Below, one piece after another: positions 1 to 23,191 of a stretch of 64,000 nucleotides of DNA (within the stretch, counting starts at the first letter, position 1; every line of letters starts with the position of its first letter). The stretch is from Diadema antillarum (lineage: Eukaryota). The stretch covers positions 496,001-560,000 of the forward strand of contig NW_027271914.1 of NCBI RefSeq assembly GCF_040938485.1. The letters run 5' to 3'. The translations under genes were made by a program, and so were the position numbers. Below the pieces are notes generated by a model. The model was not told the DNA's origin. It did no database searches and was given only the letters and a program-made list of their open reading frames with translations.

Positions 1-382
1 GACGGGGAGTTTACACTGTGGCATGAGGGAAGCGTCTGTATCTCCACGGAAATATTGTACAGTCTGCAAAATTTGTCGTAAAAAATGAGAACAGGTATGG
101 GCTGTCCATAACATAAAGGGGAACGGCAACAATGAGATTTCAGCTCGATGGAGCACAGGGCAAAGTGAGGGCACTGTTTTTAAATGCAATAACCTTTCCT
201 TTCCTTCATCAGAAATATGCTAAATTTACATATCTGTTGCGAGTAGTCCGATTTATCGCTTACCCGTATAAATTCTCATTTTATTGTAGAAGTCCTAAAT
301 GCCTAGTCCCTCAGCTAGTATAAAACAAAGGGCTCAGATATTATATCATATCATAGTTATAAGTCCATAGATGAAAGTGCTG

Positions 383-770
383 TTAAAGGGATCGTATAGT
401 TTTGGTTGGGACTTAACTTACGGGTTTTATCATTTTTTGGTGAGATAGTAAGAAACCTCATGAAATATGAAAGAGCATGTAATTCCAAGAGGGATTCAAT
501 GTTTATTTGATGAAAATTGGTTTTGAAATGGCCGAGATATCCAAAACAGAGCGATCCTAATAAAGTGTGGGACCCACATTTTATTACGATCGTTTTGTTT
601 TACTTTGTTTTTGGATGTTTCAGCTATTCCAAACCCGATTTTTATCAAATAAACTTTGAATTCCTCTTAAAATGGTATGCTCTGTACTATTTCATAAGTG
701 TTTTCTTGGTATCTCGCAAAAAAGTTAAAGCCCGGTTTTCATCTCCACCAATACTGTACCATCCCTTTAA
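383..770. mobile_element. Non-autonomous TTAA-flanked DNA element (Kolobok-like MITE), family copy 1
   Basis: Starts TTAA-AGGGATCGTATAGT and ends ACTGTACCATCCCT-TTAA (imperfect TIR plus TTAA TSD). The internal sequence recurs at 27106-27478 and 57010-57203. Superfamily inferred from the TTAA TSD and RR...YY termini. Confidence 0.7.
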
Positions 771-1137
771 CCTGATTTGTGTTACATACTGCACAGATAC
801 ACAAGCAATTGATAACATCTCCTGTTCAGTCATCAGAATGAACCACCTTGTTATATTATAATGAAAATCATGAATGCCATTGTGGTGTGCATGGTGTTTA
901 CAACTTAATCAGGGTACCATTAAAATTGAAGAGCTACTCGAATTATTACAGACGTCCGGTCTGGATGGCATCCGTAAAACAGCTGTGTCATGCTACATGT
1001 ACCTGTGGGTATAGCCAACAGTACACAATGAAGATTAAGAGATAATGAGCATAGGTTGGTGTGAAGGGTGAATACTTGTATACGCCTCAGCCCCTGCTCT
1101 TGCATAAGCTTTACTTATATTCGATAAACCACTGTAT

Positions 1138-1627
1138 AGGCGTTTTCACATCAGCCCGATAAAAATCCAAGCTCGAGATATTTTTCGCGATTGCGAATTA
1201 GCGCACTATTTCATTTCTTATTCACATCAGCCTGAAGAGAAGTAGCTTGAAATTTTTTCAAGCTAAGTCGACAGCTGAACGTGTGCAAACAGCATCAGTA
1301 ATGTGTGCACTTTCAAAAATTTCTCATGCTTTGTGTGCAGTTTGCCTCAATCGATCGGGTCACACATGCTAGGCATGATGGGATGCATTGCGCTAATTTC
1401 TTGAGGCGCTTTCACATTATCATATAGCGCGCTAGTTCGCCAATTATCCCGCTATTTCAGAAATTTCCCGAGTTGGACTTGAGAAATTTTCTCGACTAGA
1501 GTGATAGAATTAGTTTGCTAATTTGTGTTCACATTATCAAATAGCGCGCTATTTCGTGATCAGGTTAATTTCCCAAGTCAGAAAATAGCGCGCTATTTCA
1601 AAACATCGGGCTGATGTGAAAACGCCT
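1138..1627. mobile_element. MITE with 23-bp perfect terminal inverted repeats
   Basis: AGGCGTTTTCACATCAGCCCGAT at 1138-1160 and its exact reverse complement at 1605-1627. Internal ATAGCGCGCTAT and TTCACAT repeats. Confidence 0.75.
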
Positions 1628-1807
1628 TGTGACTATTAAACGTCTGGCAGTTTCTACTCATTTTACGTATATTTCATTCACATTGTGCATCCATACGGTG
1701 TATCTTCATGATAGATCTGTATAGAAGACTGGTGTATGAAAGTCATACGAGTCGCACACTCGCAACTTTCTTTCATGATCTCAGATGTTATAGACCGTCT
1801 GTATTTT

Positions 1808-2010
1808 ACTGTAAAGCATATTTTGGCCGCATGAAATATCCATGAAATGGATGGAGCCAACAGCCTTAACACGGCATGAAATTTTGGCTAAGTGCCTCTG
1901 GCATTTTATGCATAGTAGTGTAGACAATAAACTTTCATGTGCATTTGAATTTCGCGAATCTTGGCTCTCACGAAATTAGAATGCACGCAAATATTTCTTG
2001 TTTTACAGTA
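1808..2010. mobile_element. TA-CTGT...ACAG-TA MITE family (CGCGAAA-rich), copy
   Basis: TACTGTAAA...TTTACAGTA termini with internal TTTCGCGA motifs. Related copies at about 7484-7727, 10015-10228, 34720-34910, 44947-45183, 46283-46495, 56560-56675 and 60476-60684. Confidence 0.65.
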
Positions 2011-2554
2011 AGTATGCATCACAGAAAGATAACCCCTCATGACAAAGGATTTTCATTAAACTTTGTTGGCCAATACTGTGCTGTTCTGCTGGTACGGTGC
2101 TATTGAGATTTTATGTAGGCAGTGAAAGTCTATGACTGGCAGGTTTTGAAACATGTTTGGTATTGAGAATCTTTAAAAAAAAGAAGGAAAAAGAATAACT
2201 ACCACAGTGTAGGTGTCTCGATCTATCAAATTGTCATCCCTCGAAATTTGTGACGAGCAGTTAATGTGATATTTCTTATTTGGCCTCAAATAGGCAGGAA
2301 GAATTATTAAAGGCCGATGTGAATATTTATGTGCCATCATGACTTTCACTTAAAAAAAAAAAAAGAAGCACAGCTAGACAATAACATCCTGATTGAAAGG
2401 CATGAAAATGTTGCAGGTATTAAAGATGTCATGTACGGGCGGGGTGGTGAAGTGAGCAACTTGTACAATTTTTGTATGATTGGCACATGCCAGTCATTAT
2501 TCAATGACAACAAACTTAACACTCTACCAGCTTATGAATGCTGGCGTCATGTGC

Positions 2555-2589
<35 letters not shown>

Positions 2590-3342
2590 GGGTGGTGATA
2601 GTGTGACAGAAATGAAGGATGCCATACTTTATGGATGACTATTTTTATGAACACTTCAGGTGGTGTAAACATGCTTTGACTGGATGTTATCGGCTAGCAG
2701 TCTGCAAATTGTTTACAAAAAATAAATAAATATGCTGGTTTCCACGAGGGGAAATTGATCTCCTCTTTGAGCATTAATATTGTTTATTTTTCTTCCTGTA
2801 CGATATCCCATTAAGGGGTCTACACAGTACTTGTGATGAGATCAACAAACTGATCCATCTTATTTGTGTTGCCTCACTAAACTTTTACTCAAACAATAAT
2901 CGCTGGTACATATTGTGGTCTTTTTTTTCTTTTGATGCAGCAGTGATAAATAGTTAAAAAGATTACATCCACTCAAAATAGTTACTCTTTTGAAATTACT
3001 GATAATAAAAGGGACACATACACTCCAGCTTTGTACAATAATGATGTAATGTGGAGTCCATCATCTTAATTCTTATCTACAATGCCACTGTTTGTCTGAT
3101 TCTTTACTTCATTCAAGTGCCTGATGGCAGAGTATTGGCAGTGTCCCTGGTGCTCATGCAAATCAATAGGACATCCGTTACCTCTTCATTTCCACTTTGT
3201 GTGATGTTCAGTTGTGCAATATGAAACACGTCTTTAATTGCTGAAGGTAACAAATACTGCTGTGAATGACAAGATTTCATGTTCCTGTGCTTCACATAGA
3301 TGAATTACCACATCTGTTCGCTGCTATTTTTTTGATCGACAG

Positions 3343-6300
3343 AATGAAATTCAGCTCATGCTTAACATGGGTGTGGATCCGTCCCGCATCATCTTTGCCA
3401 ATCCCTGCAAGCAGCGGTCGCATCTCAAGTTCGCTGCCACCAACAGCGTATCCCTCATGACCTTTGACAATGAGGCTGAGCTCCACAAGATCAAGAAGAT
3501 CTACCCAGAAGCAAAGTGAGTCACTACCACCACATACATGTACTTGCCAACTGTCCCTTATTAATTGGGACTGTCCCTATTTCCATCCCAGTAAAAGAGA
3601 GAAAATTTTTAATCATGTGTCCGTATTTTTTGTGGAAATGTGGGGGTGTTAATGTGCTGGAAATTTAGGAATGTCCCTATTTTGAAAGATATTCTCCTCA
3701 TTTGTCCATATTTCTTAGGTTTCAGGGTTGGCAGGTATGCCACCAGCATTTCAGTTGTGATTGGAGGATGGTGTTTGACCTTTATAGAAAAGGGATATCC
3801 TTATTGCCATGCTGACTAATAGCCTCTGAGCCTGTGAAATTAAAAAGTAAGGATATTCTGTATGTAGTCAGTTTCTTTGTTTATAAAAGAAAGGGGACCT
3901 ACATGTAAATTTTAACTGCATGTTTATTTAAGCTGAATTTAAGCTGAATTATGTATTCATTTTGGAGCAAGCGCCATGAGCGCCTGACTTGGCGGATACC
4001 GGCGCTATACAAGACTTCATCATCTTCATCATCATGATCATGTTATTAAAAAGACAGTTTTTTTTTCATACTAAGTGTACTCCATATCTTAAATTTTCTT
4101 TTAGTTTTTTCCCTTCATTTCAAGGCAGATAGGACAAACCATGTTACTTTTGTTCTGAGAAATGTCTGTGAATCCTGTTGGTGTATAGAAGGCATAGTAG
4201 GCAGTAGAACAGTCAAAACCATAAGAGTCAAAGCCTTAGTGGTCATGATGTCAAACCATGTAGTGGAATAACGGAACAGTTGCGAATAGTTTTAAACTAT
4301 ATGGACTAATCAGCGTGATCATGTCGGCATTAATGCTGTTTGTTCTGCGTGCAACATTTCCTGTGAGTCATGTGATGGCACAGCTGCATCCTGCCACTTC
4401 TTCACAAATTTCCTCTCAATTTGTTGGAAAATAACAGTAATTCCTTACTCTGAAAAAAAAAATAGGGAAGATAATTGGTGTAGCATGAGTTTTATTGTTT
4501 CCTTCACAAGATTTGATAGCAACAGGACTAGTCTTCTCCTACCATGTGATAGAAATGTGGTCGTGCATATCTTTTACTTAAAAGCAGTGGTAGGCTAGTA
4601 GAGATATGAGTTGAGAAATTACCCCTGCCCTTTTCAAGAAGAATCTGTCAGTTTAACATCAAGCCGTTCACCAAATACTCAGTATTACTATGTAGCCCTT
4701 GTGCTCAGGGGTCAAAGAATCCCCATTTTATACTTGTATCATATTACTACTTTGCAAGACTAAGGCACATAGGACAGTTGATATGCAACATGCAAAAGCC
4801 AAAGGGGTGACCAAAAGAAACTATGCCATTTTTGGCATCCTTCTCCCCCCTCCAATCCGTGATGAAAGCTTACTGTATAAAAACAGTCAAGATTTTATGA
4901 CATTACAAGTCCATATTTGGAGGTGCATTCAACAGTCTCCATGATATTGTAGTAGACCGCATGATCACAGAAATATTTTAATGCAGGCCTGTTTGAATGT
5001 CTGGACAAGCACATTCTAAAGCTTCTCTGATTGTGAAATTATTTTTTCCTCTTGGGATGCGAGTGCATACTCTCCTGCTCAGCATTCGAACAGACTTGTT
5101 GTAGTTACAAGGTCTGTATATTTACTGTATTCTGTCTAGACTGATTTTTCGTCGCAAAAATAGTTTGGGTCATTCACTTCATGGAATTAAGCCTGCAGCA
5201 TGCATTTACACTTGTCCATAGAGCTAGTATCGATGTGAATTCCACCTGGCTTCATTCACATCCCGCCCTATTGATAGGTGTACTTAAGGATGTTCTAATG
5301 TTACATTTTTGACCCCCTGTAGGCTTGTGCTCCGCATTCTGACCGACGACTCCACAGCCCAGTGCCAGCTGGGACTCAAGTTTGGCTGTCATCCCCGCCA
5401 CGCCCCCGCCCTCCTCCGCATCGCTCAGGATCTCGAGCTCAACGTCGTCGGCGTCAGGTGAGTGGCATCTCTCTCTGAAGTATTTTCCGTCATCACGCCG
5501 ATCTTCTTATAATGTCTATTCTCATTGCCGTTCATTTGCCATGTCATATTCTACCATATTTATGAGTGCTATTACCTTTAAGGTCAGGAAATTTGATGAA
5601 AAAAAAAATGCAGATTATTTGATATGAATGGTACTCTTTCTCTTTGAGAGAACATATTTGCATTTCACTTATTTATTTCTGTACCTAATTGGTGCTCGCA
5701 CACATGTCTTCATGGTTAGGAGAGGAGGAATCTCATTCATCACAGCAAATAGTTTAACTGGTATTACAACAGGTCATGTCAAGCATGCATAAGTTTCTTC
5801 ACAAATGTGCGTGATGGAGAAACATCGTGTAATAGCTTTTGACAGTACAAAGAACGTTTCTTGGAACAAATTCCGTGGTAAAGATTGACGCTCATAAAAG
5901 ATATTTACACAGTGCATCTGATAGCTATGATGACTAATTCACTTGCCGCTCTGAAATGCCTCGTTTGCATGTGTGGTCGAGAAGTGTAAAAACCTGGTTT
6001 TTCTGAGCTATCGTTATGAATTAGATTGATGGTGTATGCTGCACAAAATGCCTTCTGTGAAAAAAAAGGACTAATTTCCCGAGTTTGTTTGAGCTGTTAT
6101 CACCTTGACTGGGTTTTGTGTTCGTACCAAATCAAAAAGTTATAAAGATCTACTTGATTGCAAATCGTTTTAAACCAAAATTTCACCATTTTTATTGATG
6201 ATACTGAAGTGTTGGATTTGGCATTTATTATCCTCGGTAGCTTCCACGTCGGTAGTGGATGCCGTGATGCCCTGACCTATCTGGAGTCCATCCGCAATGC

Positions 6301-9300
6301 TCGCGAGATCTTTGACTTCGCCGCCGACCTTGGCTACAACATGAGCCTCCTGGACATCGGAGGGGGATTCCCCGGGCAAGCCTCGGCACCCATCACATTC
6401 GAAGAGGTAAGACTGATGTGAAGACTAACTTATATTTTCAAATACAGTGGAATTAATTGTATCTGTTTTTAAGGAAATGTGTGCATTGCAAAAAAGTATT
6501 CTGTAACAGGCCAAATCTATCAAGACTTGAACAAGCAAGATCAGTTTGTCAACCTGTTGTTTGTTGGAACTAGAAATTCATGTACTACTAGGTTAACTGT
6601 GTGAAATATCACTATTCAAGGAAGCAGTTGGTCAGTTTGTACCCAAAAGCATATTACCCATGTGACAAGCAGTTGGTAGACTGCATCTGAAAATTAAAAG
6701 AAGTTCAAATATCTAAAATGCATGAAGGTATAAACATTGGCGTTTGTTGATTCTTTGTTCAAAAGGTGCAGTAGCTGTGATGAATGACTCACTTGCCGCT
6801 CTGAAATGCCTCAGTGGTTTTGTGTGGTCAAAAAGTGAAAACCTGGTTTCTCTGAGCTATTGTTACAAGTTGCTGTTGCATGAAGACATTGCCTTGTACA
6901 TTCCATTAAACAGTGACAGAGGTATGTACTGAACTCCTGTGGGGGAGGGGGTATACAGGGAGAATCTTTTCCCCATTGTTACTCTGGATGTTGCTTTCTA
7001 CAGTTGTTGAATGATGCTCATGGCAGTAAATAATTGATATAGCTTATTTGTGGTGGTCAACAGGTGTTAGTGATTTACATAATGTTGAATCTAGCATCAA
7101 TTTGGCAGAGGGCGTCTACAACCTAGAATATAGCCAATGATGGGAGAGCTCATGGCAATCATGTTCATCTTACGTGCATGTATGTAGATGGCATCAGTCA
7201 TCAACAGGGCCCTCGACGAGAGCTTCCCCGTGGGATGCGGGGTCCGTATCATCGCCGAACCGGGCCGCTTCTATGTGGCCTCGGCCGTCACCGTGATGGT
7301 TAATGTCACCACCAAGCGGCTGGTGGCCAGGGACATCCCAACCTACAAGGTTGCTGAGAGCGATGGTAAGTTGAGATTTCTACCTTATAGTTTCGCTCAC
7401 ACTGTGGCTCTCGTATCAGAAATTTCCATTAGTGGGACCACTGTGGTGCTGTCGTCCAAGCTCAGGACTTTAAAGCAAATGAATACTGTATACGCCGAAT
7501 ATTTTGCAAGGTTTTTATTTTCCCAAATTTCGCAAGTCAGGTGCTGTTCGTGAAATTAAAGACACGCAAAGATATTGACTCTGATCCCGATGTGAATGTG
7601 ACGTACGCGTGTACACTTGTTCGCTCAGTACAGGACTCCACGATCACGAATTTAGCCACTCGCGAAATCGTCGGGAATTCTTGATTCGCGAAAATTTAGA
7701 CCCGCAAAATATGTGGCTTATACAGTAAATTGCAGAAAGCTTTTGTATCAGGCCACTCCATTAAAACTTCAACATGCAGGATCATTTTGTTGTAAAACTA
7801 GAAACATTGACCGCATGAAACATTTTTTTTTTTTTTTTTCGTGGCATGATAACTTCCACGAATTGCTACTGGCATTCAATGCTTTATATGGACAAGCACT
7901 TTCACATGCATTTTACTCGCACGAATCTTGGCTCACAAAATTCTAGAAGCAGTCGGTTGATTTGTTCCTAAAGTATTTTACCCATCCGACAAGCAATTTG
8001 ATAGAATACATCTGAAAATTAGGAAGAAGTTCAAGTATCTAAAATGCCAAAGGTAGTACTGAGTAACTATGACGTTTGTTGCTTGTTTGTATAGAAGATG
8101 CAATAGCTATGATGAATGACTCACTTGCCGCTCTGAAATGCCTCGGTGGTTGTGTGTGGTCAAAAAGTGAAAACCTGGTTTCTCTGAGCTATTGTTACAA
8201 GTTGCTTCTTCCTTGCTGTCATCTAAGACTTTGCCTTGTACGTGCCATTAAACAGTGAGGGAAGTATAATACTGAACTCTCATCAGACGATAGGAGTGTT
8301 ACGAGTTATGATTATATTCCACATACTAAGAATGTTGCAATAGGATTGGTCCAGAGCTGATCACGTGATGAAGCGTAGTTTTGCCCATCACATCACATGA
8401 GAAGAAAAGTTCGTTACACTCTATGTTGATAGTCCCTTTTGTTTCGCTGATCTCCACACAGTCCTAATGCAAGATGAGTATGCACGAAATAAAAGCGCAT
8501 TGCACTGTCGACTATCATGTGACCTAGGTCACTTGATAGTACACAGTGCAACGCACCTTCACTTCGGTGCCGCGCAGTGCGCGCAGCAAATTCATTGTTT
8601 TGTCATCTACGCGCACACGTAGCCTAAGCCCTAAGGATACCTAAAGACAGCTAAAACGGTTTCAGATGTGGAATAAAATGGGAATTTCTAGGACCCTAGA
8701 TATGGAATATAAAGCAAATAATCAACTTTTAGTTTCAGGCAATGAGACAAACTATCACTTCCTCGGCGATCTGAATGTGTACGCTATCTTTCCTCAGCTG
8801 CGCTTCGGAAAGAAAGCTACATCCAGACTGCCTCGGAAGTGATAGTTTGTACCATCACCTTCACCAACGTTGATTATTTGCTCACTATCAGTGAGAGAGA
8901 ACAGTGAAGTTTTAGACTTGTGCCCACTTGTATTGCAACAGGGATGTCACCCCATTTGCTGTCCCTGTGTACCCATTCTCTGTGTGTTTGTACCAGACGA
9001 TTGATAGAGCGTATTGATTCTATTATCTATAGACATCGTGGCAAACAGCGTCGCCCCAAGCAAGAAGGACGAGCCAGCCTTCATGTATTATGTCAACGAT
9101 GGCGTCTACGGCTCCTTCAACTGCCTCCTCTTCGACCACGCCTCGGTGGAGCCGGTCCTTCTCAACGTGAGCTTCCTTTTCTCACTCTACTTCCCATTCA
9201 AAAACTAGAAAAGCACTCACAGAGTGCAGACCTCTGCCAAGCAGCTCACTTCCACCCATATACGTGTACACCGAAACTGGCCCAATTTTCCAATAATGAT

Positions 9301-12300
9301 GAAGAACTCTTTCTAGTGTCTCGACTTTAGTTTCTTGCTGTGCCGAGAGTGCGCGTTCATTGTGCATATGCACACCTGAAAGTCGCACAACTTGAATTCC
9401 TTGTTGTTGGCCCTACTTAACAATGATAAAGAATCTATTAAAAAAAAAATCAGAGAAATTCTTGGATCCAGACAGTGATTTGTATCACTACCAAGATTTA
9501 ATCATCTGTTCCCTGTGTCATTATTAATCTTTCCTGTAAGTTTCATTCAAATCTAATTTTCAGCTTTTCAAGTTATTTTGTGAACAGTTGCAAACAGACA
9601 AACGGATGAACAAACTAACACGGCAAAGCATAACCTTCTTGATGGAGTTAATAAAACATTTGAACCTTGTTATGATAAATGCTGCTTGGGACCTGCGGGA
9701 TTTCCTTGTTTTATTGGAAATCTCATTATATCAGGGATTAAACAAAAAAAAAAATATCAAAGAATATGAAAGGAATGGGACCTGTATCATTACCTCATTA
9801 AAACAGGTATACAATGTATCGTTGTGATTTGACTCCACTGTAATTACAAAAGAACAATAGGAACCTCCATGAGAAAGCAGGGGATTCAGCATATTCCCAA
9901 AACTGAGGTGTCTTTTTCAAAAGAGTAAATGTTTCATCATATACACTGTGTCTTATCAAATGTATTGCCTTTGTTTAGCTGTTTTTAGGACAAAACGTAT
10001 GAATTACTAAATGATACTGTAAAAGTGGTTTCTTTCGCGGTGGTTTTATTTTCGTGCTTTTCGCGCTTTGAGGTTGAACCGCGAATTTAACATCACATGA
10101 AAATGTTTTGAACTTGTCGCTTGTACAACGCTATCATTACCGAACGCAAATTTAAACACACGCGAAAAAGTCTGCACCGATGGAAACCGCGAAAGTTTCT
10201 GTACGTGAAAAAAACCACTTTTACAGTAGTGAGATGTGATAGCATGAGTTTGTGACCTCCAAATGCAAAGGACATACCGATAAATAGGATGTTGTATTTC
10301 TGTCTCGACCTCCAGGAGCGCCCGGCAGACACACAGACGTTTTCCACCAGCATCTGGGGTCCGTCCTGCGACGGGATGGATCGCATCATGGAGCACTGCA
10401 TCATGCCTGAGCTCGACGTCGGGGAGTGGCTCGTCTTCCGAGGTACGTCACACTCTCTCTGTCTCCTCCTCCCACTCCATCTCCTCCTCCATCCACCTCC
10501 CTTTGTAGTTAAAGGCCATGTTTAAGTTGACTTGAAATGGTAGTGAAAAAAAATACAAATGGAATTTTATTTTTTCTTCAAACTTGGAAGTAAAATGAGT
10601 GTTATGAAATTTTATTGTTCCACATGTTTTTTACCCAGTTAGGATGATTTTTTTGCAAGCCACATATCGTTGCTGGGGTGACAAGACCTTGTATCTGCAA
10701 TTTTGGTGAAAATTACTTTTCTGGGTTAATGGTCAGATAATCAGTTAAGTGATGTCCTGTCCAAATCCTAGATGTCTTACCCCAAAAATGTAGCCACCAT
10801 AGCATGTCAAAGAAATGTCTATCCCATTGGATACAGTGCTTTGGCTGCCATGTTTTTTTGCTCTCGTGAACATTTGACATTTTGTAGATACGAGGTCTTG
10901 TCGCCCCAGCGACGATATGCAAATTAGCAGATGTGAGGATGTCATTTGTTTGCAACTGCTGTTGCTTTGTGCACAAATATCCTTATTTTTTGTCAATAGA
11001 TTAGCAAATAAAACACTTTTGTTGTCTAAAGTCATCCTTTGCTGGGTTCTTGCAATGCTATGAATATTTAATGTCAAGAGTACAAGACTGTCTTTTTATT
11101 TCTTTTCATTTTCCCGAGTTAATTTAGTTAAAGATAGGGGTGTAGGTCAAGGGGAGACTTAATCACTGTTCTGTGCACATGTTGTTGGCAGTAGTATTGG
11201 TTTTTCTTCGAAAAATGTGAAATGTTACAAAACCAAAAAATCTATTACATCTTGTTCAATAGATCTTGACTACTCTTTCTGATTTGCTTTGTCTATCGAA
11301 GCCAATATGAACATAGGATGGATAGCCGTGTTAAGATATGATTGAGGAAGACCATGCCGAAGAATGAATGCTGCTGCAAGCAATGTCTTCTTCTTCTATT
11401 TTTTTTTCTTTCTGTAAACTGCTTGGTCAATTCAGCAAATTTCCCATCCCCCCTTTTAACAGACATGGGCGCCTACACTCTGTGTGCCAGCTCCGAGTTC
11501 AACGGTTTCAAGAGACCGCGTGGTTACTACGTCATGTCCAACGTTTACCTGTAAGTCAAAGATTCATCGTCCTTGTGCCATGTCTGTATGGATGACATGT
11601 TGTTGTTGTTGGGGTTTTTTTTTTTGGGGGGGGGGTGCAAATCCTGACTGAAGTCCCTAGCAGTATCCAATTTCATGCCCTTTTGAGTGCAAGCAAGCTT
11701 CTCATGAATGGTTTTCGGTCACTCTCTTTCATTTTATTTGGGATTCCTGTGTCAAACATTTATCTATGAGCCTGCTGTTTGCCCTCTTTCATCCCAAACA
11801 TTCTGCATGATTGCTGTCAGCTTGCACTGAAAAAGTTGTTTCTTCAACCTTCTCTAAACCGATGATGTAAGGAGACAAAGCGCTGCCTGTAGGCTTAATC
11901 TTTCAGCCGTTCAACAAGGTGACGACTGTTCACTTGTGTACTAGACACCCTTCAGAGTACAGGGGGCATTTCCGTAGTGTTGAGAGAAATGAGGGAATGG
12001 GCAACAAGGTGTGCTTGCTTCCATGAACATACTTGTATCCCCTCCAGAGTAATTTGACTACAGACTTGCCTTACTTACACACTATGGCGTACCATGGTTT
12101 AGTCTAGTGGGCATTCGTACCCAAGATGCTTAGCCAAGATGTCTTGTAACCCGAGACAATTTCTGTGACATCATTTATTGAATGCATACACACTCTTTGG
12201 TTCTCCAAGAACTAAAGTCCCTTTTATGGTTGATGTAGATTGCCAAGTTGTCACAGCACACACACACACACGAGAGATAGTCCACCGAAGCTGTTGCTTT

Positions 12301-12514
12301 TCACCTTTTGATAATTTTCGAGACAAGTTATTTTGAAAACATTGTTTGCTGCCATTCCAGGCCCATTCTTGAGTACCTGCTGGATGACTGCAAGTCTGTG
12401 CGTGGTGGCCATCTGACTGACGAAGGCTACGCTGCCTGTCTGGCTGGGGACGACACCCTCTTCAAGAGCCCCTACGGCATGAACGACAGCCCCATCATCG
12501 CAGCGAAGATTTGA
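3343..12514 (+). CDS. ODC1: Ornithine decarboxylase (PLP-dependent fold III), 5'-partial in this window
   Basis: Exons 3343-3515, 5323-5457, 6241-6406, 7188-7365, 9033-9166, 10316-10442, 11463-11550 and 12361-12514; all junctions GT-AG with compatible phases. Motifs: IIFANPCK, MTFDNEAEL, LVLRI, KFG, SFHVGSGC (His197), LLDIGGGFPG, IIAEPGRF (Glu274/Arg277), YYVNDGVYGSFNC, FDHA (Asp332), WGPSCDG (Cys360/Asp361), MGAYT, FNGF. The exons carrying PFYAVKCN/Lys69 were not found in 1-3342. Confidence 0.96.
3961..4040 (+). repeat. 3' tail of an L2/CR1-type retroposon (SINE or LINE end) followed by (CAT)n
   Basis: GCGCCATGAGCGCC...GGCGCTATACAAG followed by a simple-repeat tail resembles L2-type 3' ends. 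Recognised by pattern only. Confidence 0.4.
5920..6012 (+). ncRNA. Intronic box C/D snoRNA, copy A
   Basis: 5' stem GATAGC (5920-5925), box C ATGATGA (5927-5933), guide TTCACTTGCCGCT, box D' CTGA (5951-5954), guide AAAACCTGGTTTTT, box D CTGA (6003-6006), 3' stem GCTATC (6007-6012). Sense strand, ODC intron 5458-6240. Confidence 0.85.
6769..6862 (+). ncRNA. Intronic box C/D snoRNA, copy B
   Basis: Stem CAGTAGC/GCTATTG (one G-U pair), box C GTGATGA (6777-6783), guide ACTCACTTGCCGCT, D' CTGA (6801-6804), guide AAAACCTGGTTTCT, D CTGA (6852-6855). ODC intron 6407-7187. Confidence 0.88.
8101..8194 (+). ncRNA. Intronic box C/D snoRNA, copy C
   Basis: Perfect 7-bp stem CAATAGC/GCTATTG, box C ATGATGA (8109-8115), D' CTGA (8133-8136), D CTGA (8184-8187). 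Four differences from copy B over 94 nt. ODC intron 7366-9032. Confidence 0.88.
10663..10919. mobile_element. MITE with ~33-bp imperfect TIRs
   Basis: CATATCGTTGCTGGGGTGACAAGACCTTGTATCT ... AGATACGAGGTCTTGTCGCCCCAGCGACGATATG. Confidence 0.7.
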
Positions 12515-14932
12515 CAGGATCCGATAAAATGACACATGAGGGAACAAACGAGTCCAGCAATTGTGGCCCAATGCCTTCTCAGTTTCATCCACCCTGTTGT
12601 CTATACACATGAAAATAGAACCATGATTATTCCTTTGTTCTCCAAGAATTGATATCCCGCCCACGGGGAAATTTGCTTCTTGTTACCTCGTCAGTTGTAG
12701 TAGACTGGACGTGAACTGTTTGACAGCTCGTAATGTAGAGAACAGTAGTTTCTTTGAAAAACTTGTTTGTTGTATATTACTCCTTTTGTCTGACTCTGTG
12801 ACATATTGGCATTAATTTCTCTAATGATTGGTGATAATGCTGTGTATAAAATGCATTTGTAGGAACTTTGAAGGAGCTCTGGAGTTGATCTAGATTGAGG
12901 TGCCTTTGCTGTATTGGTATCTCTCTTGTTAAAAAAAAAAAATCTTTGAGCCAAGTGGTGGAAGTAAAAGGGCCCATATATTGTGGTTCTTATCTTAGTA
13001 TACCATTAATACACATCACACAGGGTGTTAGTGAATATTATCCACCCGGCAGTAACTTTGGAACAGCCAGAAATACACTGGGCAGAGCAAAGTGTGTTTG
13101 GACTGTTCAAAAGTGATGGAGGGTGGTTGATTTTACTGATGCCCGACAGAGAAATGTGTATTATCTGTTTTATAGAATGATGTCATTTAAATTTTGTGGC
13201 AGCCATTTCTGGAAGATTTCCAGGCCAACACCATCTCCAAGCTAACTGAGCCACACACACAAACAGTTGCAATGAATTTGTAATACACAGGCAGTGCAGA
13301 CGAGTAGTCATTAGTACAAGTCATTAGTATACCAATGCCTGTTGAAGAATAAAGTTGGGTCAGTAGGCAAAAATAAAAAAACAGACAAAAGAACAGACGT
13401 CACATGAAAGCTCTTGGCCAATCATTTGATTACGATCCATATTACCATTTTACAAAGCAGTACGAAAAGAAAAATAAAGCACTTGGCTTAGACAATGTGT
13501 CCTACATCTTATGGAAAACATAAGAAAATAGCCTCTTTCTAAAAAAAAAAAAAATTGTGTCTTCAATTCAGAGGCATCCCACCGAGTTGTATAAATGCAT
13601 TGTATACACACTGATTATGAGGCAGCTGGCTTGTAGAGAAGCACTGTATTACTGTTTATTGCTTCTCGGTATTTAGCACATTTTGGAGGCGGTACGCATG
13701 AAAGTATTATTGAATAGTTTGTACTGAGTATTGTATTAACCATAGCTTTCACGATCATCATTTTTGTCGCGCTATTTCATTTTGGAACCAGCACCTATCG
13801 GACTGTTATTGCATCAACCCCTGGCATGGTTGTATTAGAACTAATGAACTTGTGTCGTGTGTATATAGTACAGTATTAGTGTGTAACGCATATTGCTATT
13901 AATCTACAGTAAGTATGATATAATGAGATGACTCAGTAACTGGTACAGGGCTGCATCATTGGAGTGCAGTGAGGAGTAAAGCTCCCTAACAAAGAACAAT
14001 TATTTATGTGGTTGAAGAATTTACTCAATAATCTGTAGAGAGTTTACCCAAGAAAGAAAGAATCCGTAAGGATTCATTTTTTGTTCATTTTCCCCCATCT
14101 TCCAATGAGGAATACTCCAGAGATACTTGTAACCTTAACTACGTAGGGATGTCATGGGGGTTAGGTTATCGGATGTTCTGTGTGCCGAGTGTGAATGTCT
14201 GTGTATGTATGCTTGTGTGTGCAATGAGGCTAGACATATCATTTGAACCTGAACTACGTAATTTATAGAGTTTTGATTGTAAGAGATGTTCTCTATGGGA
14301 ACCATCAAAACTGGATATTTTAGGCGCTTGCACTAGGGTTGAATTTTGGTTTGCATGCCTTAAAAAAAAAGAAAAAAAAAGTGCCAATGGTTTTATTTTC
14401 CAGGGATTTCTCTTCTGTTCAAGAGCTGAGACTGAAGTTAAATTGTCCTTCACTAAGGCCTGGTGTATGTACATGAGGGTTTTCTGATAAGTTTATAAGT
14501 TTGAATATAATGTAGGTGGGGAAAAATGAACTCTAGAAAAAAAAAAATCTGTGAAGAACCTTTAAAAGGTGTTTCATCAAATCTAGAATTTGTGAAAAAG
14601 AATGGGATCGGGAGATGAGATTTGAACCTTTGAAAGATATACCAAATACTGATGGAACATTTCAGTACATGTACAGTTTGCATTCAAAAGTTGATTTTGC
14701 TGCATCTGTAGATGAATGATAAGACTTTCTTTATTATGCTCATGTGTATTTTACATTAGTATTATGTAGTGTCATATGCATGGATGTCGGTAAAAGAGCT
14801 TATCAGCTGAAAATACAGAATTTGTTTAATCAAAGGCAGGTTATTGTCAATATTATTGATTGGTCTTGTGGGACATTAAAGTTGAATTGTATGAGGTACG
14901 TGTATTTGCAAAAATTGATCATTATTGCGTAA

Positions 14933-14938
14933 AATAAA
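14933..14938 (+). terminator. Probable ODC polyadenylation signal (3'UTR about 2.4 kb)
   Basis: AATAAA at the end of a U-rich, UTR-like stretch, followed by TTTGT/TTTTGT elements. Earlier AATAAA hexamers near 13350-13480 are possible alternative sites. Confidence 0.5.
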
Positions 14939-15065
14939 GGGGTTCATGTCACTAGCATTTGTACGATTGCTTTTGTATACATGTCAAGAATTGTCAGTGA
15001 TGAAAGAAGCTGTAAAAATACTATGATAGTGAGATGGGATCATAGGTCCACAATGTGAGGTACAG

Positions 15066-15135
15066 GTGTGTGTGTGTGTGTGTGTGTGCATGTGTACGTG
15101 CGTGCGTGTGCGTGTGTTTGTGTGTGTTTGTGTAC
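15066..15135. repeat. (GT)n microsatellite
   Basis: Direct reading of the sequence. Confidence 0.9.
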
Positions 15136-16799
15136 ATGTTGGTTATGCAGATTTTGTAGAGACACAGTACCTGAACAAAGTAAACAAATACATGTATATG
15201 GCTGACAGGCCAGTTAATGAATTTGTTTAATATATTCAAGTTTTACAATGTATATACAAAAGTATTAACAGCAATCCCAGAGCCGTGTCACACAAATCAC
15301 TGTACTACACTGTGCTGTGCACAGTGGTTGCAGTTACCATGGTAGCAGTTAGGTGCAAACCAATCAACTCTCAAGTATTAAATTAAATTAAATTAAATTA
15401 AATTCAAATCTGTTTCACATCTCTTTACATTGTTGCCATGGTAACAGTTATTTTATATATACATTGTTCATTCAAACCCCTTTCAACAATTGAAAGATTT
15501 GGGTGTACGGATTAGCTCGGAAGCAATGGTACAGCTAGAGGTGTTACATTCTCAAACACCACAAATTTGAGTCACTTAGTAAATACAGTACAGTGCACTC
15601 TCGTTATAATGAACATGGCAAAAACGAAATTCTCGTTACAACGAAGTAAAAATTCAGGTCTTAAAATTATCATCTCTATATCTTTATGCACTTTAAAATT
15701 CAGGTATAGCTACAATTTCAATATAACGAAAGAAAACCGACGGTGCCGAGGACTACGTTATAAGGGAAATGCACTGTAATGGTCGGTTGCCATGAGTTGT
15801 GATCTAAACTGGTTAGCCTGTGCAGAGGTGCAACATGATAGAAGTTATCGTGCATCTTTCTACGTGTCCAGAGACCAAGTAGTATCAGAATGCTGGAGGC
15901 TTCAACAACATCGGTCACTGAATTGGGAAATTTATTGAATTTGCAAGTTTTACCCTTTTTGTTTTTGTTTTGACGATCGATCTCGACTTGGGACCTTCTC
16001 TCTGAGAAAAGAGTCACATCTACTCTCCCACCATGGAAATCACACATGAAGTTACATATATCATAGAGTATCAACAATTGGAAGTACATGTACTTGCTGT
16101 ACTATATTATGTATAAGCTGTTATTTTCGCGAGGGCTTGCGTTCACAGTTGGATCGCGAATTTAACAACACGCGAAAATGTCGCCATGCGCTACGGTAGT
16201 GGTGCATTTACCATAGCGTGGGTGCCAATTTGCGAAAACAACATCTTGCGAAAGTGTCTGTGACCTCATTTGCAAAAATAACAGCTCATGCAGTACCTCC
16301 TTATCAAAATACATGGTCTTGTAACTGCAATGTTCATACACTAATTGATCCAGATAGATGTTTGAATCTACATTTGGTAGCCTCAGTAGTATCATTAGCT
16401 CTGGAAGAGAGCCAGCATTCTGTTACCATTAACCCCATCAGCTTGTGGGTCTGTAATATCAGGGCGGTGTTCGGGACCTATTTGGCTTTTAAACGCCGTA
16501 ACTTATTTCAGCCATATATAGCGGCCACCATACGGGGGATATCTTTCCTAACCATTGAAATTCGAGTATATGTATTTCGTTCTAAATTTACCGTTGAAAT
16601 ACAGTTTATAATTCAATGAAATGTGATTTTTTTTTCTTCGCCTCCGAATTTTATCTTAGAACGAGCATGATGGCTTCATAGCGTAAAGGAATGTTAGACA
16701 GCCAGTTGTAACGCTTTAGAACCTAGACACGTGTTTCATCCCATTTGCATGGATTACGAACAAAACACCTGTGTTGTCTATTGTCGACCCGACGAGGAT

Positions 16800-17664: not shown

Positions 17665-19670
17665 CTAGTCCGTCTTCTCGGGGGTAACGTCCCGTTTAAT
17701 CATGAGGACTTTCATCTGGTTGGGGCGGAGAATTTGCCCCGCTATCCATCCTTTGTCCAGAACGTCGGGGCGGTCGCCGGGGGCGAAGTCGACGAGGAAC
17801 CGCTGCATGATTCTGGTGAAGACGATGAACAGCTCATTCTTGGCGAGCTGTTCGCCGATGCACATCCGGGGACCTTGTGTGGATGACGTAAGCAAAGTTA
17901 TGAAAGATGGAGAAGAACAATATTACAGGTTCGCTCTGCGTAGATCATAAGCACGGCCATAAAGGAGGAGCTGAACAGGACAGTACATCTATTTTGCTTT
18001 AGTTTATTATTGTCCCAATTACATTGCATCGTTATTCTGCCATTTTATTGTAAATAGGCCTACGTATCTTATAACGAACTCTTTTTAGAACGAAATGTAT
18101 GTTGTCCAGATAATAGTGGTGGGTGGTCGCGAAGTTCTTGTAAGCGCCGTTTGGAAGGATCCGATGTATAGATAACGCTTAGTTCTAAACATAAACATAA
18201 TATATCTTTTTTTTTCCCGTTTAGCTATCACTTATCTCTTCGTCACTTCAGAGACATAATAGCTTTAGATCTGCGACGCGAACGCTAAGACGACGCAGCC
18301 TCCCGTGTTGAACAATTGAAACAGCTGCCTCGCGCATGTGCAGAACGGTTACAGCTCGTTATTCCGAAGGTTCGTTATTCCGAAGGCTCTTTATTCCTAA
18401 GATTCGTTATTCCGAAGGTTCATTGTTCCGAATTTCATTTTCGGATTAACCAATCTTCGGAATAACGAACCTTCGGAATAACGCCACAAATTTTCGGATT
18501 AACGGACCCTTTTTTCATTTTCGGATTAACGAACCTGTAGGTATAGGGAATTTACGTGGTTCGGATTAAGGACCCTTCGGAATAACGAACCTTCGGAATA
18601 GCGAACCTTCGGAATAACGAACAGCACCCGTGCAGAACACCATTTTAAGCCTAATTAGCGTCGTCATAATATATCTAGCGTTCGCGTCGCAAATCTAAAG
18701 CTCGCTAATAAAATGAGTGTCATAATTTCGTATACCATTTCATGTAAAGACGTGTATAATGCCGTAGGTGTACACACGTGTCACGCATAGCGTTGGCACT
18801 ATACTAAACTAAGATGTATGATTTTCAGTCGAACTTGCCTGACCTATGGATGGATTATCACATCAGTAACTGACAATGTAAGATTATTATCTCTCGAAAC
18901 TGAATATTCCCCGCAGAAAACAACATTACCTATATCCTTCATCCTCTATGCAAGCGATTACTTTACTCGAAACTTCACAAATCTCTTCCCATTTTACCCT
19001 GAAAAAAAAAATGAGAGGAATTAACAACATTCAGTTGTTGTTACTAACAATCATAAGCAACTCTCTAGAGCTTTCGACTATAATCGAGGCCTGTGACCTA
19101 CCGACGCCGAACGGGAGGAAGGCCGGCGGATCGCGGATGACTTTCGTACGGTCGCCGGACAGAAACCGGTGTGGGTTGAACAGCTCTGGGTCATGCCAAT
19201 GGTCCGGGTCGTGGTGACAGAACATGACATTGCCGAGCAGGATGGAACCCTNNNNNNNNNNNNNNNNNNNNNNNNNNNNNNNNNNNNNNNNNNNNNNNNN
19301 NNNNNNNNNNNNNNNNNNNNNNNNNNNNNNNNNNNNNNNNNNNNNNNNNNNNNNNNNNNNNNNNNNNNNNNNNNNNNNNNNNNNNNNNNNNNNNNNNNNN
19401 NNNNNNNNNNNNNNNNNNNNNNTTGTCACTGCCATTAGCTAATGGCAATGTCATCCCCCCTGCCTTGTACTGGAGGTAATTCAAATGCTCTTTTACATGC
19501 TTGATGTAGAAAAATGACTTTTACTAAGATACTTGCACACGATACAAATACACGTACGTATGTTTGCTATTAAGGGTTTCCTCCCCGGCACAGTATTGAA
19601 GAAGGAAACAAATCTACGCAAAATAAATTGATGAAGTTATTAATAGATGAGCTGACAGACATATACGTAG

Positions 19671-19702
<32 letters not shown>

Positions 19703-22700
19703 CGGAACAAGAAATAAATTATGACTAACAATATCCTTGACATAATAACTGCCCCGTCTTCAAGTTAGAGTCTCATATAAGATATAAGGCAATGTCAATG
19801 TCCCATCAGTGACACAGAGTTTATTGATATCGAAATCACACTAAATTTTGGATGAACTAACATGGAGATTGCTAATTATACTCGGCCGGGATTACACCTA
19901 CAAGTCGCAGTATTTTTGATTACCTTCGGGATAGTGTAGTCTCGCAGTACAGCCGTTTCAGATGCAGAATGCGGCACTGCTAGTGGTCCCACGGGCCTCA
20001 ATCGGAGTACTTCCATGATAGTTGCTCGAGTGAACGGCATAGCCTTTTGGTCCTGAAGACTGGGTTTTCGTCCGGCCAGAATCAGGTCTATCTCTTCCTG
20101 AACCTGTCAATATAAATGAGGTCATCGTAATGTTCCATCATCACCTTATGCTATAGTTGTATGGTAAGGAAATTTGTCTAATATCTAATGGTTAGCAGGC
20201 CTTAAATGACACTAACATTTTTTTTTCTGGTGCCCCTGTTCGGACCACTGAAATCTTTGAATTTGATATTTTGGTGGTCCCAAAAAGAGAAATGTAGTGG
20301 CCTGAAATAAAAAGGAATATAACCATTGCTAACATTTATTTTTGAATTTTAGCTGTCCGATTGGGCCACTAGAAGGCAAACTTTTTGGGAATTTGGTGGC
20401 CAGACACAGAAGTGGTGGCCCTTGGCCCCCGGCCACCGGGACACTGCTAATATCGAGCCCTGGTTAGTATACACGTGTGTATTCATGTGCATGTTCTTGG
20501 GTGTGATTGGAATGAAGTTGAAGTTTATCATCTATCTATATTTACATGTTTACATGGCATAAAACATATTATGACAAAAGACACAATCATGCATGAATAC
20601 AGGATAAAAGATACAAGAAAATGGCATGAATGCTAATCAAGTCCGATACCTGTGTGATATGCTTTAAAGCTTCCGCTATGGAAGCATTAGATGCTATATG
20701 TAAAAGGGAAACAAAAACATCTGAAGGGTTCATGGACAATTAGGATAAACCGTCTATTGCCTACAAACATACGCACAACTCACTCAGAAAAATAGGTTCA
20801 ACTTTGCAGACCATTGACACACCGGGAGCACCTTTACAGGTGCAACTTTGCATCTTTTAGACCAGAACTGTGACACTGGTTTGAAAGGTGCAAAGCTGCC
20901 CCTTACAGATGCTCCAAAGGTGACAATGGTAAAGCTGCAATTTTCTCAGAGTGCGGGAGATTCGAACAAGGGACATCGTCACTGATAATCCTTGGTCTTA
21001 TCCACTGAGCTACAACAGCTACAACCCAACTCCTCCCCCCCCCCCACCCGTAGATCCACCATGCACTGCTTTAAAGGCCACCCAAGGGAGACGACAAAGT
21101 GGCCGTTACAGACAGTTGGCCGCCATCAGACAGGGTCATTAACATGATTTTTCGGGGGTGGGGTGTTTAGTATAGTCGTATACTGCAGGTGGCCGCTTAG
21201 GCAGGTCGTGACTGTAAATGATGTGTTTACCGTGGTAGGATAATTTGCTGAACCCCTTCAATGTGCTATTGTAGCCGGCGTATACACACCTGTTTCTGCA
21301 CCTGCTGATGGTGAGCCATAATTAACACGGCCCAACACAAGGTATTGGACGTGGTGTCAGTCCCGGCCAACATGACGTCGTACAACACTCGCCAAATATC
21401 TTCCGTTGGAATCTGCCTCCTCTCCGGGAGGCTTGCCCCCTCCTTCTCCTCATCCGAGGAAGCGATGATTCGCTCGATGATGGTACTGCCCTCACCGTTG
21501 CTTGCAGTCGCATCCAGTCGTTTCTCCACGGCCGTGGTCATGGTCCGTTTCATCACCTCGTAAGCCTTCCTCATCGGCCTCGTGCTGGGCAGTAAGTACA
21601 GGAAAGGCAGATACCGTATTCTGTCCGTTAAAGCGGTCGACAACGAGTGTCCCATGATCGTATCGATGGCATCGATTATTTCGAGTAACTTGGGGTCCTC
21701 GTACTCCAGTCGGTGGCCGTAAGCCAAGGCGTAGATGATGTTGGCTACGGACTGCGTGATCTTGTTGCGCGGGTCGCAGGAGATGGGACCAAAGTTGGCG
21801 AGCTCGTCGATGAGTTGATCGGCCTCGAGGCTGATGATGCTCTCCATCCGTCGTCCCCAGGAGCCAACGTTCTTGAGACACGGGCCAACCACCCGACGAG
21901 TGGTCTTCCACGACTGGGCGTGACTTCCAAGCAGTCGATGAGCTTTTTTATCGGTTACCATGGTGATAATCAATACGACAAGAAAAATACACATAGGCCT
22001 AAATCAACAACATGACACGTGCTGTAATCTAATCGAATCTATTTTAGTAACCTAAACTTTTGCGTCATCGTGTTAATGGTGAAAACGACAAAAATATGAC
22101 AGATCAGCGTATCAATTAAGTGTATATCACATCACACGTATTGCTACTTTTTCTAATCTAATCTAATCTAATCTAATCTAATCTAATCTAATCTAATCTA
22201 ATCTAATCTAATCCTTAGCAGGACTTGGTACAATGAAATACCATAATGATATTAAACAAAACAGTGTTTTCATAATGTGATTGACTGCATGCATAATAAT
22301 GATAGGCATCACGTTACAGTTAATGGGTACTATTTTCGTCAGAGCGCATGGTCGTGCATGCATTATCAGTAGAAATCAGTGTTACGCGTTATACTAAACC
22401 AATAACATGTTGTGTATGTTTGTCATTGATTATGCCTTCTAAGCTAAAACTATGCATTACAAACTGACCAATAAGCTCCTGCGTAATCGTCGGTAAAAAA
22501 AAATAAAAAGAAAGAAATCATTCTTGGATTTATTACAGTTATTGTGTGCATGTAACCTTATAGTGCTTTCGAAATCATTGCATTGAATTCATAACAGCAT
22601 AACAATAGTGCACGGCGCTGATCATAAACAACCACAGCAGTGTCAATATATAGGCCCTACATGTAAAAGAGAGAGGGATATATATATATCTCAAATGAAA

Positions 22701-23191
22701 GTATAGATAACTCGAATTACGTCTTTGTATGAATTTCATGTCCTCATGATCCACAGATCAGTTTTATTAGTGACAAACTGGCTATGGCGCTCTAATCAAG
22801 GGAACAAACCATTGCGTCCGCCGTACATGCACTCGTACATGGCTGGGCCCCTCCTGTCATTGAAGACATCTTTCTTCTTGATAAAAGCCTCCTGGATGAT
22901 CTCGGGGTCGTTCAGGACAACGACGAAATCTCGGCCTTTTCGGAAGCTGAAGATCTTTCCGAATTCCTTGGCGAGTTGTGCGAAGAGTTCGTCATGCCTT
23001 TCCCCTCCGGGCGAACGACGAAGAAGCCCTGCAAATAATTTGAGCTGCAGAAACCACGGACCAGGAGGTAGGCGAAAGCATAGTTGAAGTTCTCTCACGA
23101 TCACGAAGACGGCGACGGCAATGATAAAACTAAGCAGCAGCTTTGTCAGGTCGCTTAGATTCCATGAGTCAACGGTGACCGTGAGAGCCAT
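17665..23191 (-). CDS. Cytochrome P450, CYP2 clan (microsomal), about 523 aa
   Basis: Exons (minus) 23191-22810, 21942-21290, 20103-19924, 19249-19102 and 17873-17665; phases 1/0/0/1 are compatible. N-terminal TM helix plus LPPGP; C-helix WKTTRR; I-helix AGTDTT; K-helix EVLR; PHRF (PERF); heme motif FGVGPRMCIG spans exons 4-5. An alternative in-frame ATG lies at 23203. The exon-2 acceptor is atypical (see findings). Subfamily cannot be assigned by eye. Confidence 0.93.
18261..18702. mobile_element. MITE with ~27-bp TIRs that hosts a nested insertion
   Basis: AGCTTTAGATCTGCGACGCGAACGCTA ... TAGCGTTCGCGTCGCAAATCTAAAGCT. Confidence 0.75.
18347..18629. mobile_element. Foldback/Mutator-like element made of 16-bp TTCGGAATAACGAACC units, with 9-bp TSD
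   Basis: Direct repeat GTGCAGAAC at 18338-18346 and 18630-18638. The left arm carries GTTATTCCGAAGGTTC units and the right arm carries their reverse complement. Confidence 0.75.
19668..19701. repeat. (TAGA)n microsatellite
   Basis: Direct reading of the sequence. Confidence 0.9.
22152..22213. repeat. (TCTAA)n pentanucleotide microsatellite
   Basis: Direct reading of the sequence. Confidence 0.9.

Follow-up and report, generated by a model that had tools for sequence, protein, structure and literature searches.

Do the three copies of a ~95-nt unit in the introns of the ODC gene of Diadema antillarum represent genuine box C/D snoRNA genes, and what would such RNAs guide? The unit is present three times in the window (the whole 64-kb stretch of DNA analysed here), each time on the forward strand and sense to ODC. 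From their sequence, boundaries and pattern of divergence, the copies are very probably real, selected box C/D snoRNA genes.

The host was identified as ODC by matches to Pfam PF02784/PF00278 on every exon flanking the copies. These are coding exons 5 (5323-5457), 6 (6241-6406, carrying the SFHVGSGC and LDIGGGFPG motifs), 7 (7188-7365) and 8 (9033-9166), all on the forward strand. Copies A (5919-6013), B (6768-6863) and C (8100-8195) occupy the consecutive coding introns 5 (5458-6240), 6 (6407-7187) and 7 (7366-9032), one per intron. The original prediction had placed three sense-strand copies in three consecutive ODC introns, and both the locations and the host were borne out, the coordinates used here being those of the full-stem spans. 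The distance from the end of the unit to the 3' splice site was 227 nt for A, 324 nt for B and 837 nt for C. The optimum distance in mammals is ~70-80 nt, and the departure of the 227-837 nt spacing from it counts against the snoRNA reading. The ODC locus is neighboured by a P450 exon, and two U5 snRNA genes were the only matches in the window at the Rfam 15 gathering threshold. The Rfam search detected no H/ACA-like match in the urchin ODC gene.

In all three copies, box C (RUGAUGA) lies close to the 5' end and box D (CUGA) close to the 3' end, and a terminal stem of 7-8 bp encloses them; both the individual MFE structures and the consensus fold recovered this stem. In copy A, the 5' stem (5919-5925) is followed by box C ATGATGA (5927-5933), a D' guide (5939-5950), the D' box CTGA (5951-5954), a D guide (5989-6002), box D CTGA (6003-6006) and the 3' stem (6007-6013). 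The same order was found in copy B (5' stem 6768-6775; box C GTGATGA 6777-6783; D' guide 6789-6800; D' CTGA 6801-6804; D guide 6838-6851; box D CTGA 6852-6855; 3' stem 6856-6863) and in copy C (5' stem 8100-8107; box C ATGATGA 8109-8115; D' guide 8121-8132; D' CTGA 8133-8136; D guide 8170-8183; box D CTGA 8184-8187; 3' stem 8188-8195). Box D' was an exact, invariant CUGA, and the best C' candidate was an invariant but degenerate GUGUGGU that fits box C' at four of seven positions, a point against the snoRNA reading. Three stem pairs changed among A, B and C with pairing preserved: pair 1 (A-U, G-U and A-U), the pair next outward (G-C, A-U and A-U, a compensatory change) and a third (U-G, C-G and C-G). 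Boxes C, D' and D had been foreseen correctly, whereas the predicted stem of 6-7 bp was too short; covariation was likewise confirmed, although the single A-U/G-U/G-C pair first described had merged two neighbouring pairs.

Two elements preceding CTGA had been called near-invariant and proved fully so in all three copies: the 12-nt TCACTTGCCGCT followed by CTGA on the D' side, and AAAACCTGGTTT, separated from CTGA by (C/T)T, on the box D side. Further invariant blocks were AAUGCCUC after D', UGUGUGGUC and AAGUG. A profile built from the three copies and run over both strands of the window recovered these three alone (E 1e-27 to 1e-32), with the next-best match at E 0.05. A high-copy repeat would have spoken against the snoRNA reading; in the window there are only these three copies, all sense and all intronic. 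When the whole window was scanned for RUGAUGA with CUGA 45-140 nt downstream and a terminal stem of 5 bp or more, exactly copies A, B and C were returned. Composition-matched shuffles gave 0.14 matches per 64 kb with a stem of at least 6 bp, and the observed rate was ~20 times that of the shuffles. The features of the three copies support, at the sequence level, their assignment as intron-encoded box C/D snoRNAs.

Could the boxes nevertheless be retained only through recent duplication, the units being decaying pseudo-snoRNAs or a duplicated intronic repeat? Copies B and C do belong to a larger duplication of ~330 nt on the forward strand (6636-6945 around B, duplicated at 7945-8290 around C). 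Within this same duplication, however, the unit is 95.7% identical with zero indels, whereas the flanks have fallen to 78% identity with 20 indel columns (Fisher p = 4.7e-5), a contrast that constitutes a signature of purifying selection on the units. Between B and C there are four differences in 94 positions, as in the original prediction: one at a stem pair that is still paired, one at the R of RUGAUGA, and two in the spacer. Copy A has 13-16 positions differing from the other paralogs; against C, its unit is 86% identical and its flanks ~42%. Although A lacks any flank similarity, it still has its boxes and its two guides, together with a stem that is compensated. Relic status is therefore very improbable. 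A different proposal is that the Diadema unit is a strongly diverged member of another snoRNA type hosted by echinoid ODC genes, with its guides replaced. The ODC gene of Lytechinus variegatus contains a SNORD69-like C/D snoRNA in introns 8 and 9 (L126, 12762-12831 and 15814-15889), whose D guide GUUCAAUCCAACC is the SNORD69 consensus guide. The ODC gene of a relative (L001) contains a C/D snoRNA at 563-643 with the variant D guide UUCCAUCCAACA, for which the best Rfam matches were SNORD49 and snoR77Y. This type resembles that of Diadema in its ODC host, echinoid source, multiple intronic paralogs and long terminal stem (6-9 bp). Descent from it would fit the location of the L001 copy in the same intron as a Diadema copy, 224 nt from the 3' splice site versus 227 nt for copy A, and the sequence UUGCCG(C)UCUGAA around D', common to both types with a one-base indel. 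Yet the stems, D guide, spacer and length (70-81 versus 93-96 nt) all differ, and the Lytechinus copies lie in introns 8 and 9 rather than 5-7. Neither the Lytechinus/L001-type profile searched against the window nor the Diadema profile searched against L126 and L001 gave anything at E <=1. Membership in the SNORD69-like type was rejected, as the Diadema unit does not carry GUUCAAUCCAACC and no homology was detectable; common descent with replaced guides appears improbable.

No snoRNA family was found in the window by the Rfam 15 scan at gathering threshold. In a permissive scan, the best C/D matches were SNORD11B (20.2 bits), snoR113 (19.4), Z30 (18.5) and SNORD103 (16.8), compared with gathering scores of 45-50 bits for these families (36-50 bits over the wider set) and with E >=0.7 throughout. 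These families have generic boxes C/D and a terminal stem in common with the Diadema unit, but their guides differ. Since the best C/D score lies far under the gathering threshold, the earlier suggestion of an unannotated family is reasonable. When the literature was searched for either guide sequence or for the exact antisense of the 28S loop described below, only PCR primers came up; searches on snoRNAs in ODC introns or molluscs returned nothing relevant except SNORA80B in ODC1. Searches for orthologous introns by way of exon-sized ORFs brought up distant relatives only. The unit did not occur in ODC of Lytechinus variegatus, the starfish Patiria miniata, the crinoid Anneissia japonica, the bivalves Tegillarca granosa and Mizuhopecten yessoensis, and two further relatives. 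The lineage specificity raised as a possibility beforehand is thus supported within ODC by comparison of orthologous sequences. The window itself matches the Diadema antillarum assembly at 100% identity, and this sole matching locus, coming from the same genome, is not independent evidence.

Targets in rRNA were sought in 87 real eukaryotic LSU loci, all of them heterologous to Diadema. With at most one G-U pair allowed, the D' guide had a single recurrent match across these loci, a hairpin loop in the 28S 5' domain paired over 10-13 bp. The loop, A(A/G)CGGCGAGUGAA, is conserved and lies ~90 nt from the 28S 5' end in domain I. Where it reads AGCGGCGAGUGAA, the duplex was the best in the whole rDNA contig (-22 to -23 kcal/mol; next best -16 to -20), and the match was reached by 0-2 of 500 shuffled guides. 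On the commoner loop AACGGCGAGUGAA, guide position 2 is mismatched and the match beyond it spans 10-11 bp, a length of 11 bp being reached by ~3-5% of shuffled guides; pairing failed at 8 bp where the loop is GAGCGAA. In the D' pairing, the fifth guide nucleotide, which marks the site of 2'-O-methylation, faces the second G of CGG. The G predicted to be methylated is the 40th nucleotide in 28S when numbering starts at the first G of GCGGAGGAAAAGAAAC. We tentatively regard this conserved loop as the candidate target of the D' guide, at a chance somewhat below even. For the D guide, a convincing rRNA target was not found among the LSU loci searched. The best site for this guide was GGGAAYCRGGUUA, in domain III of 28S, at the cost of 2-5 G-U pairs. 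A companion claim to the original prediction had both guides acting on adjacent 28S sites; it survives for the D' guide and fails for the D guide, whose pairing with the neighbouring AACCAGG (7 bp, -10.9 kcal/mol) was exceeded by 1-14 better sites in contigs of 1-5 kb. Adjacent targeting was rejected for the D guide, as 7 bp is not above background.

The copies could equally be genuine C/D snoRNAs whose match to the 28S loop is coincidental. Such orphan guides might act on another RNA (snRNA, tRNA, mRNA or a pre-rRNA spacer), serve as chaperones without methylation, or be precursors of smaller RNAs. The D guide without a target, pairing with AACCAGG over just 7 bp, favours this interpretation, as does the only modest significance of the D' match if the loop is AACGG. 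The fly map points the same way, with no 2'-O-methylation in the first ~780 nt of 28S and thus none at the target loop; nor is the loop known to carry one in human or yeast. The invariance of AAUGCCUC, UGUGUGGUC and AAGUG is also without explanation, these blocks having no recurrent rRNA complement for accessory pairing. On the other hand, all 12 nt of the D' element are invariant in paralogs that differ at 13-16 positions elsewhere, and the best conserved complement of this element, in the canonical register, is part of an rRNA loop that is universally conserved. No complementarity to either guide was found within the window, including the ODC gene and the two U5 snRNA genes. Weighing these points, we consider coincidence with the 28S loop a serious contender, though one that falls a little short of an even chance.

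For the reading of copies A-C as selected snoRNA genes, established snoRNP biology suggests how they would be produced. The RNAs would be made from ODC pre-mRNA, and the 7-8 bp terminal stem would join boxes C and D into a kink-turn that recruits Snu13, Nop58, Nop56 and fibrillarin. Exonucleases would then trim the excised intron to the particle, leaving a predicted RNA of ~85-95 nt. The invariant 12-nt D' element would most likely pair with the 28S loop A(A/G)CGGCGAGUGAA and direct 2'-O-methylation opposite its fifth nucleotide, whereas the conserved element before box D may be an orphan guide. The fullest version of this scenario is a diadematoid-specific C/D family, born and triplicated within an existing echinoid snoRNA host and directing 2'-O-methylation of the 28S loop ~90 nt in; as a whole, it is doubtful. 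If true, the hosted family would differ by urchin lineage (SNORD69-like in Lytechinus) and the modified 28S site would be one that is unmodified in the fly map. It would then be a clean natural example in which a new rRNA modification arose through snoRNA birth and host-gene turnover, and Lytechinus would supply the built-in negative control.

The novelty lies in the family and its predicted rRNA target; the arrangement is the textbook metazoan mode, and the accepted view of snoRNA function is unchanged. With this locus, an animal genome whose annotation is poor gains an uncatalogued, putative family of box C/D snoRNAs, and a new methylation site in 28S domain I is predicted in a form that can be tested. 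As stated in the original prediction, human ODC1 hosts the H/ACA RNA SNORA80B (PMC12884767). The host gene is orthologous to that of Diadema, but SNORA80B is a single-copy H/ACA pseudouridylation guide, whereas the Diadema RNAs are of box C/D type and present in three copies. ODC thus recurs as a snoRNA host, carrying an H/ACA RNA in human and C/D RNAs of two distinct families in sea urchins, and provides a compact case for snoRNA gain, inter-intron duplication and replacement inside one host. The U14-like processing snoRNA of Tetrahymena was considered as an analogue and dismissed as having no bearing on the Diadema units. Closer parallels come from vertebrates, where U14 (SNORD14) paralogs occupy introns of hsc70/HSPA8, and from the U18 and U36 paralogs in introns of ribosomal-protein genes. 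These systems differ from Diadema in host gene and guides and show no Rfam-level similarity to it, but like Diadema they have paralogs of one C/D snoRNA placed one per intron, in sense orientation and in adjacent introns of a growth-related host that is highly expressed, with release via intron processing.

The three sense-strand copies of the original prediction were recovered at 5919-6013 (copy A), 6768-6863 (copy B) and 8100-8195 (copy C) of the forward strand, full terminal stems included, by sequence reading, a repeat finder and alignment. A profile HMM built from them and run along both strands of the 64 kb matched only these three (E 1e-27 to 1e-32, against 0.05 for the hit that followed). 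All copies shared one order of elements. After the 5' strand of the stem and a single unpaired U came box C, which reads GTGATGA in B and ATGATGA in the other two, and then the D' guide, box D' (CTGA), a spacer of ~48 nt, the D guide, box D (CTGA) and the 3' stem strand. The D' guide was the 12-mer TCACTTGCCGCT, invariant in the three copies, the spacer contained the invariant blocks AATGCCTC, TGTGTGGTC and AAGTG, and box D was preceded by the invariant AAAACCTGGTTT and two more bases. A deliberately simple C/D finder returned exactly A, B and C across the whole window, and 0.14 matches per window on composition-matched shuffles.

The ORF pieces flanking the units matched both Pfam domains of ornithine/DAP/arginine decarboxylases. 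Exon translations were aligned to a full-length relative and the resulting profile was used for searching; the best match of the window exons was the D. antillarum ODC-like protein (95%, calculated on tblastn segments that include a little intron sequence). The gene comprises 11 coding exons, with coding exons 1-3 lying upstream of the window, and positions 1-15514 were identical to contig JBFRCO010001026.1 of GCA_040938485.1 (100% over 15,514 bases). Based on splice-site contexts, the units occupy coding introns 5 (5458-6240), 6 (6407-7187) and 7 (7366-9032), all on the forward strand, and end 227 nt (A), 324 nt (B) and 837 nt (C) before the 3' splice site. Mammalian C/D snoRNAs have an optimum of ~70-80 nt, so the Diadema units lie farther away; their long terminal stems would fit splicing-independent assembly.

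The stems of the individual copies are 7-8 bp long, and the consensus fold of the three gave a terminal helix of 8-9 bp. One of its pairs is compensatory, G-C in copy A and A-U in the other two, and two further one-sided changes preserved pairing. Stem covariation was therefore correctly predicted, although two adjacent pairs had originally been fused into one. Copies B and C lie inside a ~330-nt duplication (6636-6945 and 7945-8290) whose segments are purely intronic. Because the exon between them is not itself duplicated, intron-to-intron copying is indicated rather than simple tandem duplication. Within this duplication, the flanks showed 78% identity with 20 indel columns, whereas the 94-nt unit retained 95.7% identity with zero indels (Fisher p = 4.7e-5). 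Of the four differences, one is at a stem position that still pairs (G-U versus A-U), one is at the R of RUGAUGA and two are in the spacer; all four would be harmless for a C/D RNA. Copy A was 83-86% identical to B or C inside the unit, and its flanks had no similarity to theirs (~42% in a forced alignment). Such conservation of the unit above its flanks is evidence of selection. As to a repeat dispersed in both orientations, only A, B and C were present within the 64-kb window, all on the forward strand.

An Rfam comparison had been proposed along with the original prediction, and no family matched the units. At gathering thresholds, Rfam 15 returned no snoRNA family in the window, only two U5 snRNA genes located elsewhere in it, and a permissive scan of the unit region yielded generic C/D matches (<=20 bits, E >=0.7), none with a common guide. 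For calibration, ODC introns of other urchins contain C/D snoRNAs whose guide is also that of a known family, and these scored 24-32 bits. The remainder of the Diadema ODC gene gave no snoRNA-like match. Judged from sequence, A, B and C are very probably real box C/D snoRNA genes, and appear to represent a new family of standard arrangement.

The two U5 spliceosomal snRNA genes are full-length, on the reverse strand at 24459-24577 and 28038-28156 (89 and 92 bits, gathering 40), 3.6 kb apart, and differ mainly at the 3' stem-loop. Cytochrome P450 exons occupy ~19000-23300 of the same strand, where a 242-aa ORF (21266-21994) matches P450 clusters. N runs occur at ~17.1-17.5 kb and 19.1-19.4 kb.

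Neither guide had a complement within the 64-kb window, ODC and U5 genes included. For rRNA targets, 120 metagenomic loci with the conserved eukaryotic LSU motif GCGGAGGAAAAGAAAC were fetched, and 87 proved to be rDNA. Across these 87, the sole recurrent match of the D' guide with at most one G-U pair was the loop A(A/G)CGGCGAGUGAA, 35 nt downstream of GCGGAGGAAAAGAAAC. Where the loop starts with AG, the duplex spans 13 bp for copy A and 12 bp for B and C, is the best anywhere in the rDNA of those contigs (-22 to -23 kcal/mol) and is equalled by 0-2 of 500 shuffled guides. Where it starts with AA, 11 bp (copy A) or 10 bp (B, C) remain after a position-2 mismatch, and ~3-5% of shuffled guides reach 11 bp; loops reading GAGCGAA matched poorly. 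The fifth-nucleotide rule would place methylation at the second G of CGG in the loop. This 28S loop is not known to be methylated in human or yeast. In a published fly map, the first 28S methylation is Gm789, with none before it. A genuine target would constitute a new methylation site; scored on LSU of other organisms, this assignment is possible, at somewhat less than even chances.

The D guide is a near-palindrome, AAAACC-T-GGTTTT (AAAAACC-T-GGTTTTT in copy A), at 5988-6002 (A), 6838-6851 (B) and 8170-8183 (C) of the forward strand. This palindrome could let two snoRNA molecules pair, or may be coincidence. Pairing with a nearby 28S AACCAGG reached just 7 bp, not above background, and the best candidate, a 28S domain III site, required 2-5 G-U pairs. 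The D guide is treated as a putative orphan guide.

The suspected lineage restriction held in ODC: the unit was absent from the ODC genes of the urchin Lytechinus variegatus (ODC protein identity 74%), the starfish Patiria miniata, the crinoid Anneissia japonica, the bivalves Tegillarca granosa and Mizuhopecten yessoensis, and two further relatives. Among the sampled ODC genes, the family is restricted to Diadema. In the Lytechinus variegatus ODC locus (L126), coding introns 8 and 9 instead contain two copies (12762-12831 and 15814-15889) of a C/D snoRNA of 70-76 nt. The D guide of this RNA, GUUCAAUCCAACC, is identical to that of the SNORD69 consensus; the score was 24.4 bits, under the gathering threshold of 37. 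An intron of the L126 gene also contains a long inverted repeat (4518-4729) with weak plant/insect miRNA-precursor model scores, far below gathering, which looks like a MITE-type hairpin. A C/D snoRNA of the same type lies at 563-643 of a Lytechinus-like urchin contig (L001), in the intron-5 equivalent and 224 nt from the splice site; its D' region weakly matches SNORD49 and snoR77Y (29-32 bits). No homology was detected between this type and the Diadema unit. Human ODC1 hosts the H/ACA RNA SNORA80B (PMC12884767). With snoRNAs in human, Lytechinus and Diadema, ODC recurs as a snoRNA host, with different families in different lineages.
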